A stretch of 64,000 bases of DNA, from assembly GCA_965644295.1 (NCBI GenBank), contig CBFFRP010000430.1, positions 186,001-250,000 of the forward strand, in the 5' to 3' direction. Source of the stretch: Paraphysomonas bandaiensis. Its lineage: Eukaryota > Protista > Chrysophyceae. The position numbers were made by a program, and so were the translations under genes. Numbering within the stretch: the stretch's first letter is position 1; each line of letters opens with the position of its first letter. Under the pieces are notes generated by a model. That model was given only the letters and a program-made list of their open reading frames with translations. It ran no database searches and was not told the origin of the DNA. Positions 10,671 through 15,039 of the stretch are shown in pieces.

Positions 10671-11574
10671 ATGCTGAAAAGTCTATCAAAACATAGTGTT
10701 TTTAACATTTTCCCTGTTTTTTCTGTGTGGTTTTCTGGATATCTAGATTCCTGTTGTCGAAAATTGACACGATGCTCAACAAGAGCCTGTGGTGCATTAA
10801 ACTGATCAAATATTCACTTGCATCCACCATACAGGGACATATTTCATCATGGATGAAAATGTTGTTGATAATGTATACCAGATAGTGAAGCAGCATATTG
10901 AGAAATTCAGTGATCGGCAGGTGTGGGTTGGCATTATTGGACCCCCAGGAGCTGGTAAGGATGCTTGCATACATATATAGATAAAGATATGAACATATTA
11001 TGGTTTTGTCGTGCTGCAATTGATTAAATGAAGTTTTGTAGGGAAAAGTACAATAGCAACGGCTTTACGAGATAGAGTTTCGAATTCCATTGTCGTTCCT
11101 ATGGATGGCTTTCACCTCTATAAATCACAGCTGATGGAGATGGAAGATTCTAGTCTTGCTCTTCGCAAAAGGGGTTCACACTGGACTTTTGATGCTGAAA
11201 AATTTGTTTCAACTCTTATGATTGCAAAGCAAAAAGGCGAAGGTGTCTTCCCGTCATTTGATCATTCAGTAGGAGATCCTGTTGAAGGTAGTATCGTAGT
11301 GACCAGAGAACATGATGTCGTTATTGTTGAGGGACTTTATTTATTACTTCCTAATTCACCCTGGAATGAACTAAAGAACTTGCTTGATGTGACTATCTTT
11401 ATTGATTGCGATATGGACACTCTACGACGACGACTGGTGAGTAGGCATATGAACTGCTTCAACATGTCGGAGGAGCAAGCAGTCTATCGCGCTGAAGATA
11501 ATGACCTTCCCAATGCCATTCAGGTTTTGTCAACGAAAGTGAGCGCAGATTTCATTGTAGATAATAAGTCATAG
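10671..11574 (+). CDS. P-loop kinase, YFH7/YggC (PRK/uridine/pantothenate kinase-like) family; start uncertain (10671 or 10849)
   Basis: Walker A GIIGPPGAG|KST split by an intron, plus MDGFHL, RGSHWTFD and VIVEGLYLLL motifs. Confidence 0.82.
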
Positions 11575-12268
11575 TATTGTGTTTCAGTACTTGCTTGTGA
11601 TGCATGTAGCCATGGGTTATGCTCAGGGTAGTGGTATTCTAGACAAATATTTGGATGATTTACGTGGATTCAGCTTGTAATAAACTCTTTGTATTATATG
11701 TGATTTTAGAATCGGCACAAAATCTTAGTGTTGTCTTTGTTGTGTGTTCTGAATGGACCTACAACCTACTACACTCTACACCTCTACACTCTACACTATG
11801 GCCATTATCGGAATTGGGTACCCAGCGATTGAATAAAGAATAAAGTAAGTATTCGTGGTGTTAAGTAAGCAGCGATAATATTTTTAATTAAAATGTCTTT
11901 GCATTAAAATATTCAACTATCTGGTCATATGTGCTCGGAGCTAGGAACTAGCCAAGACCTTCTAGATATTAGATATCTAGATATCAACATTCAATATATA
12001 GACCACCAAATTCCAATTTTCTGGCTGCTGTGTTATACGTTCCGTGAATATACGTTAATCATGAAATTCTATTTAGCATTGTTTTCTGTCAAGGTCACGT
12101 TGCGTCTGAAAATTGTTTTGACAGCAGTTGTGAATACTACACTCAGGAATGTTGTCAGCTAAAAAAGTAATCAAGTTCAAATAATATAGATTTTATTAGC
12201 AATTCTGTCATCACAATGCTAGTAAAACCTCTGCATGTCCCGATCAAAATATTTGTCAGCAGTTACTC

Positions 12269-13418
12269 TTACGCACCAAGAACGGGGTGAGTCTCATAAA
12301 CATTGCCAGCAGTTTGGATAACGGCAGGTGCTTTCACGATCTCAGCAATATCAGCCTCTAGCTTGGCGGTGATGTTGTGTACTTTGTGGTCCTTGGAAGA
12401 AAGACCGGCGCGATAGTCGGCGATTGCCTTGGCGTAGACCTCTCCGACGACATCCTTACCCCGCTTGCCCTTGGGTCCGGCGGCGAGAGTCGCAATGGCC
12501 TGAGAGAGGGCAGCATCTTTTACCTTACGATCTGTGGAGACCACATTGAAAGCCTCTGACTTAACAGTTTGCATCATGTCCGTGCGGATGGCAGCATTGG
12601 TAGCCTCGTTAAGAGAGGCCAGGGCATCCAGTTTCTTCTGGATTGCGCGGTGCAAGTCGTTCTGGTGTGTAAGGTTTAAGGCGGTCGCCTGGGCCGCGGC
12701 TACCTCATCGATTCCGGTGAACATGTCCTTGAAGACATCCTTTGCATCAACAAATCCCTCAGAGCTGTCAATAGCATCGTTGATCTCGGCAACAGCCTTG
12801 TCGTCGACGTCCTTCCAGAAGTTGGCGATATATTCACCAATCCAGCTTGTCTTCTCCAAGTAAATAGGCAACACTACCATATCGTAGGCGTGCCACATCA
12901 TGCAGAATGCACCAACAAGGTAAAATTTATAGTCAACCACAATGACCTGCATAATTTACATTATAAAATACAAAAAATACAAAACGAAACGCACCTCATG
13001 GGCAATCATAGGGGAGGCAAGAGAAATAGAAACAGGGAGTGCCCATTTCCAATCGTCAAGTCCTAGGTATTGAAGAATACCAACATCTTTGCTATCAACT
13101 TTCGTCTTCTTGGACTCTACTCAGGCAATTAGTGATGCAAATATATAATATTAATATATTACCGATGACATTAACCAATGCCTGGTGCTCCTCGTCGTGC
13201 TGCTCCCTAGCAAGGATTTCCTCCATTTGCGCCCTGAGTCTAGCTTTTCTTTCATGCTCCTGGCGACGAATATACGACACTTCCTCGCCTTGTTCCTTTG
13301 TAGCAAGATCGACCATATGTCTTGACACAACCACACCCATACGAACATTATGCTGCAACCCGCTCCTCATTTGGGGGGCAATGGCAGATACGCCTCTCCT
13401 TAATCCATTCATCATCAT
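12269..13418 (-). CDS. ATP4: Mitochondrial ATP synthase peripheral-stalk subunit b with N-terminal IF1-like segment (351 aa)
   Basis: Exons 13418-13163, 13116-12995 and 12946-12269 join in frame. Presequence, then two hydrophobic segments around HEVIVVD (cf. NE-x-YV motif of Atp4), then a long helical stalk with KKLDALA. Confidence 0.75.
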
Positions 13419-15039
13419 TGAAAATGCACCTCCAGGGACTGCCACTAGTGCTAAATCAATGTATATGTACTATTGCACCAATTATGGTGGACTATTTTTG
13501 CACATTAATTAGCGTCACGTGCAACACACACATAGTCTATCTACAGTAAAAGTACAGTACATACAGTATGATGTAATGTGTTGGTGCAGACAGTGTCTGC
13601 TTACTCATGTCATGTTACTGTAACATCTCGATTCTACATTTCGCACTTTGAACAGACACAGTAAACTAAAAACTGAATATTTTATTGTGAAGAGATTTCT
13701 GAAATCACCATCAGCACAAATGATGCAGGATTGTATTTTCCCATTTTTTTTGTATTTATCCGGGTTTTCTACAAAGGTTGGAATATATATGTCCATTTTA
13801 TGTACAATAAACTGTAGATGTGTTAATTCTCATATCAAGTTTCACTAGTTTAATACACTGATAGTGAACAACAGAGATCATTAATGCTACCTTATCACCT
13901 TTAACGGTTGAGTTCATACAAAAATAACACTTATGACCTTGAGAAATAAAAGATTACGGCTATCACTGCATGAGACTTTATGTTGTTATCAATAGCTTAG
14001 ATATAGAGCAGTATGTATCGTGTATGTTTATTGAAGAGACATGAAGAATACTTCTGGGTACAAGATTTTCTATACTCTATTCGGTTTAAGAAAGTGTAGT
14101 AGTATGAGGAAGCCACGTCTTAATCCCGTGCCATTGATATAATTCTTAGATTTGATGCACAGAAGCTATCCTACACCCCATTATCTTGGCATTCTCCTAT
14201 CCGGTTCCTGCACTACTCACACGGGAAAAATAAAAATGGCCAGGTACAGAATCTGTTGTTATAGGGACAGTTGCTGGACCTGTGGTACTCCAAAAAATGG
14301 AAATTTCTTTAGATCTAATTCTTTTTCCTATGAATTAGAATTCCACTTTGGGTATCGTTTTGCTACGTTACTTCTGAAAGCGATTTTTTTATTAGATTAC
14401 TGTCATTTTACATATATTGGATATAAGATAATGTCCCCTCTTTCATTTCCACCAGGTTAGGGAACAATATATTGCAATATTACCTTAGATAGAGACCCAT
14501 CAATATTATTGGTGGAATTATTAAACCGACCACACAATAATATTGCAGTATGTTAGTACCATTTTTCAGTAATTAAACACTTGCGTAGAATCCGTTTTTA
14601 GTACGAAATTAGTCATTGCGATCTCATGATTACCAAACCGACTACGCTGCCAAGCAGACTATCTATTGTCTATTGCCTAGCCACTAGCTAGCTAGTCATC
14701 GCTTTCCTCATACTCATTCTCCGAGCCATCATCGGTGACGTCATCATCACCACATTCATTCAAAGTTAATTGAAATATGTATGCATAGAAAAATGTTTTA
14801 TTTATGAAAGTGTAAGAATATAGCAGTTTTAAAAGCAGGTCGTAGACATCGTATGAGCGTATTACATAAGATGTTGTAATTCTGCTAGGTTTAGTACAAA
14901 CGAAAGGGTGAACTTAATTAATTTTTTCAAACCTACCAATATCAAGATACAACTTTCAAAACGGCAAGGTATGACCGAAACGAAACAATCACAATACAAT
15001 ACAGACATTGTTTTACACTGCACATCCACTGCATGATAC

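Follow-up and report, generated by a model that had tools for sequence, protein, structure and literature searches.

We report that the minus-strand gene at positions 13418..12269 of the window (the whole stretch of 64,000 nucleotides from Paraphysomonas bandaiensis that was analysed) encodes a single polypeptide consisting of a presequence, a helix homologous to the inhibitor IF1, a spacer and ATP synthase subunit b. The fusion suggests a built-in brake on ATP hydrolysis. The spliced coding sequence comprises 1056 nt in three exons, from the ATG at 13418 to the end, including the stop codon, at 12269, and gives 351 amino acids; without splicing, the frame from the same ATG stops after residue 85. 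The features of the gene are:

12176..13497, minus strand: extent of the mRNA in cDNA contigs, with the 5' end at least at 13497 and the poly-A after about 12176; contigs of the RNA runs extend over this span too.
13418-13163, minus strand: exon 1, residues 1-86.
13314..13418, minus strand: exon 1, putative mitochondrial presequence, residues 1-35, with five K/R and no D/E.
13163..13313, minus strand: exon 1, IF1-like module, residues 36-86, the inhibitory-helix motif followed by an acidic His-containing helix.
13117..13162, minus strand: intron 1, 46 nt, GT..AG, phase 1, separating the exon of the IF1-like module from the b part, seen in transcripts.
12995..13116, minus strand: exon 2, residues 86-126, a K/E-rich variable linker, then GLDDWKxALP, which is conserved, and the first of the two hydrophobic hairpin helices of b.
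12947..12994, minus strand: intron 2, 48 nt, GT..AG, phase 0, seen in transcripts.
12269..12946, minus strand: exon 3, residues 127-351 and the stop codon, the second hydrophobic helix, the long b stalk helix and a conserved C-terminal part (GNVYETHP).

The JGI cDNA contigs L001 (1240 nt, with a poly-A tail) and L002 aligned in three blocks, 13497-13163, 13116-12995 and 12946-12176, from which exactly both introns had been removed. Logan contigs from the RNA runs X2, X11 and X12, which belong to three studies, have joints that skip 46 and 48 nt at the intron sites, and in one RNA contig (run X12, record 5) all three exons are joined; in run X18, the kind of which is not on record, both introns are kept. 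The two canonical in-phase introns of 46 and 48 nt that the earlier note had read from the letters are thus borne out by the sequence, the cDNA and the RNA contigs, and both of the junctions that it had singled out for an RNA check, 13163/13116 and 12995/12946, are present in transcripts, with one contig spanning the two. Since the cDNA and RNA-run contigs join exon 1 to the b exons, exon 1 is not a separate transcript, and the separate transcription that the note had listed as speaking against the fusion is not borne out; one mRNA carries both the module and b. When exon 1 is taken away from the b part no presequence is left, and thus there is no alternative route to b. A public 351-residue protein (P0001) showed a rounded identity of 100% over the exon-3 query, with one visible substitution, and has two short JGI transcript contigs as its source. 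Production of a free IF1 through retention of intron 1, which would give a 107-residue ORF (P0095), was considered and rejected, since no RNA contig keeps the intron and the tails that it would encode show no relationship from one species to the next. Downstream of the gene and on the opposite strand, a 157-residue ORF at 11101-11574 (+) is similar, with its VIVEGLYLLL...FIDCD, to the C-terminal half of enzymes of the uridine kinase/phosphoribulokinase type and is probably an exon of a neighbouring gene.

On the basis of its PF05405 domain and a C-terminus common to its relatives, we classify the gene as a nuclear gene for the mitochondrial peripheral-stalk subunit b, probably of the SAR 'b-h' type. 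Residues 125-280 matched model positions 8-162 (of 163) of Pfam PF05405 (Mt_ATP-synt_B) with 29.2 bits, where the cut-off is 21.7, and the b-like region extends over approximately residues 103-351. A full-length profile of 26 diverse relatives (profile A4), searched against PDB sequences, retrieved b chains over positions 110-270, namely those of Yarrowia/yeast (E 4e-9, 7e-8), Toxoplasma (E 2.5e-5) and bovine and others (to E 1e-3). A language-model search with the whole protein returned subunit b clusters only, and the precomputed Pfam annotation of all relatives holds PF05405 only. Hydropathy peaks at residues 111-130 and 134-154 correspond to two hydrophobic segments before the stalk helix, and the AF2 model (mean pLDDT 65.8) has helices at 108-124 and 132-264 (133 residues). 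The C-terminal 80 residues are conserved among relatives and include the GNVYETHP stretch. For SAR, the C-terminus of subunit b has been assigned by HHpred to subunit h/F6, and the 'b-h' fusion has been proposed as a SAR synapomorphy (PMC10214729). In our Pfam searches with residues 265-351 and with three relatives, no match to h/F6 (PF05511) was obtained at E up to 10, and no F6/h chain was found among the PDB matches of profile A4.

Residues 1-35 are basic and devoid of acidic residues, which fits the mitochondrial presequence that the earlier note had placed ahead of the module; they are disordered in the AF2 model, and a conserved R-x-M/F-S/V-T-L is present at the end of this putative presequence. 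The linker between the module and the b part is, in orthologue alignments, short, variable and K/E-rich, and it is without a conserved Arg-based processing motif: it reads K-D-V-G in this protein and its paralogue and R-E-V/I-G in many orthologues, and the Arg is absent from P0039, P0040 and many distant members. In 53 fusions with no more than 26-35% identity to this protein, 54-63 residues separate E46 from the Trp at which the b part starts.

The peptide that had drawn attention to exon 1, LATKEQGEEVSYIRRQEHERKARLR, said to lie at approximately 13230-13310, is present as residues 38-62 (13307-13233). The module carries the motif K41-E42-x-G-E45-E46-x-x-Y49-I50-R51, followed by the acidic His-containing helix, and residues 36-86 are predicted to be helical (helices 38-72 and 76-86 in the AF2 model). 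In the HMM alignment, residues 22-56 of bovine IF1 align without gaps to residues 38-72 of this protein, with bovine F22 onward pairing with L38-A-T-K-E-Q-G-E-E-V-S-Y-I-R, and the claimed gap-free match to the IF1 inhibitory helix, including the equivalents of E30 and Y33, therefore stands. An HMM comparison with the IATP family (PF04568), which had also been proposed, gave a divided answer. This protein alone stays below the cut-off of 25 bits (exon 1 reaches 8.8 bits with E 3, and residues 31-89 reach 12.6 bits with E 0.19), whereas IATP was listed for 13 out of 18 orthologue segments with a best E of 1e-4, and any other family for just one segment. A single-sequence phmmer search of PDB with exon 1 gave no match, and a language-model search for look-alikes of residues 31-92 gave no usable match.

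Pooling of orthologues changed this. When a profile of the 18 orthologue segments (A2) was searched against all PDB sequences, IF1 occupied the top four places (E 0.013-0.034), and GCN4 and nucleoporins appeared as noise at E 0.2-1.5. With a profile of 40 more diverse segments (A3), searched against 177,635 PDB sequences, the top nine matches were all IF1, including Toxoplasma IF1, with a best E of 5.9e-4, and the coiled-coil matches were gone. The full-length profile A4 also retrieved IF1 chains, those of yeast and Tetrahymena among them, at positions 19-95, and otherwise essentially b chains only; its other matches, TrwK/VirB4 and plant P2, were weak (E above 0.1). Our data thus indicate that the IF1 match exceeds chance once orthologues are pooled, with the homology resting on pooled profiles at an E of about 1e-3. 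A chance or convergent resemblance, in which the segment has no relation to IF1 and only extends the presequence or b as a charged amphipathic stretch, would be in keeping with the weak single-sequence IATP match (E 3), with the spurious coiled-coil matches that charged helices drew with profile A2 and with the language-model search of the segment that yielded nothing. We nevertheless regard it as very improbable: greater sequence diversity raised the IF1 matches and dropped the coiled-coil ones, IF1 of mammals, yeast, Toxoplasma and Tetrahymena were all recovered in one and the same register (profiles A3 and A4), the invariant positions are the equivalents of E30 and Y33, and a mere presequence is ruled out by the dN/dS value of the module given below.

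The genome has a paralogue on another contig (L004, G000:C75:122193-122363) that encodes 349 residues with the same exon structure and introns of 49 and 49 nt; the two coding sequences are 84% identical at the nucleotide level, and the flanks are not alignable. The dN/dS values were calculated from these two paralogues, for which dS is saturated (about 1.2-1.75), and were 0.137 for the presequence (residues 1-35), about ten times that of the rest, 0.014 for the IF1-like module (36-86), 0.018 for the linker and membrane part (87-160) and 0.019 for the stalk and C-terminus (161-351). Residues 30-77 are identical in both paralogues. Judged by these values, the module is conserved as strongly as the remainder of the subunit. 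The genome also has two beta-subunit loci (C74 and C299) and two equal-scoring alpha-type loci (C281 and C352; loci L005-L009), and the paired IF1-b, beta and alpha loci hint that the genome is a hybrid or underwent whole-genome duplication long ago.

Conservation of the motif in orthologues, on which the earlier note had made its reading depend, is pronounced. Over 196 module instances, E46, Y/F49 and E/D54 are each present in 100%, K/R41 in 99%, I/F50 in 97% and R/K51 in 73%. In the common register E46 corresponds to bovine E30, Y49 to Y33, K41 to R25 and R51 to R35, so that the equivalents of E30 and Y33 are found in every instance (Y or F at the second). We take bovine E30, Y33, R25 and R35, and also F34, to be the main F1-binding residues of IF1 according to mutational work, and the invariant residues of the module would then align with F1-contacting residues. 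In a separate observation, at least one His is present in the acidic stretch after the inhibitory helix in 109 of the 196 instances (here EQHDEEHQ, residues 70-80, approximately 13211-13179), a position resembling that of the His-rich, pH-sensing stretch of bovine IF1.

A search of 1.84 billion cluster representatives with profile A3 returned 172 proteins at E <=1e-3, 122 of them at <=1e-10, and the fusion is present in at least 172 clusters at 50% identity. Among the matches listed there were two kinds: proteins of approximately 310-370 residues in which the b part comes after the module, and short ORFs with a presequence and the module followed by a Gly and unrelated residues. Since a Gly and an unrelated tail are what is expected when the phase-1 end of the exon is read into a GT intron, these short ORFs are interpreted as exon-1 fragments, and the window's own exon-1 read-through ORF (P0095) is one of them. 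The Gly is found at the predicted site in about 110 exon-1 fragments of other organisms, which argues for wide conservation of the intron that borders the module. Two ORFs (P0112 and P0151) read in frame through the intron into the b exon, and in a genome contig from an NCBI assembly a 100-residue exon-1 ORF is located directly 5' of a b ORF.

The search for a standalone IF1 that the earlier note had suggested was answered in part. No free-standing module was found among the matches listed from the 1.84 billion representatives (profile A3), and in this genome a search with profile A2, a weak one, matched only the two fusion genes. The Pfam IATP model gave no candidate over the whole genome, but this search also missed both fusion genes and is too insensitive to exclude a free IF1. 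Among the relatives, at least one protein (P0057) has kept the presequence and the b part but is missing a stretch of about 40 residues that coincides with the IF1-like helix, and another (P0067) has kept the downstream helix and lost the E-E..Y.R motif. These two suggest that the module is dispensable in some lineages; they may represent natural loss variants or, possibly, a splice isoform.

The named carriers of the fusion are chrysophytes, Chromulina nebulosa and, as a truncated entry, Paraphysomonas vestita, in accordance with the stramenopile setting that the earlier note had assumed; none of the checked full-length matches came from an NCBI-annotated stramenopile genome. Separate IF1 chains in Toxoplasma and Tetrahymena argue that the fusion is not SAR-wide. 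One 350-residue entry, P0003 (CAE7884669.1), is filed under Symbiodinium microadriaticum and is 68% identical over its full length and 73% over exon 3; it is most likely a chrysophyte contaminant in the Symbiodinium microadriaticum assembly. The fusion-carrier records also include an MMETSP1396 entry, a name that occurs in three ciliate-related papers.

Of the functional readings we lean, by a small measure, towards a subunit b that has gained an IF1-like module between its presequence and its membrane hairpin, the module acting as a tethered, built-in hydrolysis brake. The N-terminus of mitochondrial b is on the matrix side of the membrane, and the IF1 helix exits F1 with its C-terminus outwards, which is the end that is joined to b in this fusion. 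After import the N-terminus of b would thus be situated in the matrix, as in the solved yeast and bovine enzymes, and the IF1-like helix would remain attached via a spacer of about 40 residues and constrained length. When the proton-motive force falls and ATP is hydrolysed, the helix would enter the catalytic alpha/beta interface beside the stalk and hold the rotor in place in the manner of free IF1, and rotation in the synthesis direction would eject it. The outcome would be a one-per-complex, built-in and unidirectional brake, which might target the neighbouring monomer of a dimer instead of its own F1. A complex prediction with residues 27-92 and the genome's own alpha (L008) and beta (L005) subunits returned a score of 0.00, a 'no answer' that counts neither for nor against.

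Some features of the module speak against this reading. It has no counterpart of the coiled coil through which IF1 dimerises at its C-terminus, and a cut at the conserved R-x-M would leave only about 5-8 residues before the motif; residues 8-18 of bovine IF1 contact gamma. That the N-terminus is short need not disqualify the module, as the N-terminal helix is also lacking in Euglena IF1 (PMC13632647). The earlier note had left the choice between a tethered inhibitor and a cleaved polyprotein, and the part of its proposal that holds is that one gene and one mRNA encode the presequence, the IF1-homologous helix and b, while the attachment in the mature enzyme and the inhibition of F1 stay putative. 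Were the product an IF1-b polyprotein that is cut in the linker (residues ~87-100) after import, cleavage would release an IF1 some 50-55 residues long and leave a conventional b, and the fusion would only ensure 1:1 co-expression and co-import. In all solved mitochondrial enzymes, among them those of Toxoplasma and Tetrahymena from SAR, IF1 is as a rule a free protein; the module sits in an exon separate from b, at a conserved intron, and the R-E-V/I-G in the linker of many orthologues is a possible R-2 processing site. We consider such processing unlikely in view of the linker Arg, which is not conserved (K-D-V-G here and in the paralogue, none in P0039 and P0040), of the tightly constrained length of the spacer and of the freed peptide, which would have no dimerisation region.

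It is also rather unlikely, in our judgement, that the helix is derived from IF1 but is structural and non-inhibitory, binding permanently to F1, to the neighbouring monomer or to other stator subunits and serving, for example, to stabilise dimers or rows where e and g are not found, or to guard F1 during assembly. IF1 dimers do bridge F1 heads in mammalian tetramers, an IF1-like structural subunit (plant complex I subunit P2/At2g27730) is among the weak matches, and stramenopiles are reported to be without identifiable e and g subunits (PMC10214729). Yet the invariant residues align with the inhibitory contacts of IF1 and not with a new surface, and we found no sign of another partner. We also put forward, tentatively and with rather less than even confidence, that a whole stramenopile lineage replaced free IF1 by a copy permanently tethered to the stator which serves as its own 1:1 brake and possibly spans to the partner monomer, holding dimers together without e/g.

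If the tethered brake is confirmed, no mitochondrial ATP synthase before this one would have been known to carry its inhibitor as a covalent part, and in the literature searched, the coverage of which was incomplete, there was no description of an inhibitor or IF1 fused to b. IF1 has been studied as a free, dose-regulated inhibitor controlled by pH and oligomerisation, and its effect on synthesis and the setting of its amount are debated. The fusion would be a natural experiment on the need for IF1 to diffuse, to oligomerise or to be regulated in amount; one stalk-fixed helix per complex would mean that the brake can do without any of those controls, and it would define the catalytic interface that can be reached from the stator. 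Since the Pfam score of the module is below the cut-off, it may explain why IF1 appears to be missing in these genomes. No ATP synthase structure has been solved for stramenopiles, and e/g dimerisation subunits have not been identified in them (PMC10214729); the fusion would thus constitute a target for structural biology in this group.

Compared with known systems, this gene is closest in its b part to the SAR b-h fusion (PMC10214729), with which it shares the nuclear-encoded b family and a conserved C-terminal extension. That fusion, which is the one that the earlier note had cautioned about, exists but is different: it is C-terminal and involves subunit h/F6, whereas the IF1 module here is N-terminal, adds a third component to the published b-h fusion and, like IF1 in general, is not mentioned in the main text of that paper. 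In the structures solved for SAR members, those of Toxoplasma and Tetrahymena, IF1 is a chain of its own, and the IF1 fusion is thus narrower than SAR. In its sequence the module resembles IF1 itself (PF04568; bovine IF1, yeast Inh1/Stf1), which is likewise targeted to the matrix by a presequence and has the ungapped (K/R)-E-x-(G/A)-E-E-x-x-Y-(I/F)-R and, after it, a long helix, the aligned part (bovine residues 22-56) being the core of the inhibitory region. IF1 is a free protein of approximately 80-110 residues, whereas the module is the N-terminal part of subunit b, falls short of the Pfam cut-off, is without the dimerising coiled coil at the C-terminus and probably has a very short N-terminal part before the motif. 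The plant complex I subunit P2 (At2g27730; 7a23_n / 6x89_P2) is IF1-like and was matched weakly in the same register (E 0.22-0.67), but it is a free small subunit of complex I, neither part of ATP synthase nor a fusion. The N-terminal inhibitory region of Paracoccus zeta (2ll0_A) was also matched weakly by profile A3 (E 0.61), in the same register as IF1. We know of no inhibitor sited on subunit b of the peripheral stalk. In bacterial F-ATPases, built-in inhibitors are the C-terminal domain of epsilon, alphaproteobacterial zeta and the C-terminal extension of mycobacterial alpha (PMC8617483). Like these, the proposed brake would be an attached, one-per-enzyme element that blocks rotation in the hydrolysis direction; the carriers differ, being the rotor subunit epsilon, the free zeta and the catalytic alpha in bacteria, and the peripheral-stalk subunit b here.
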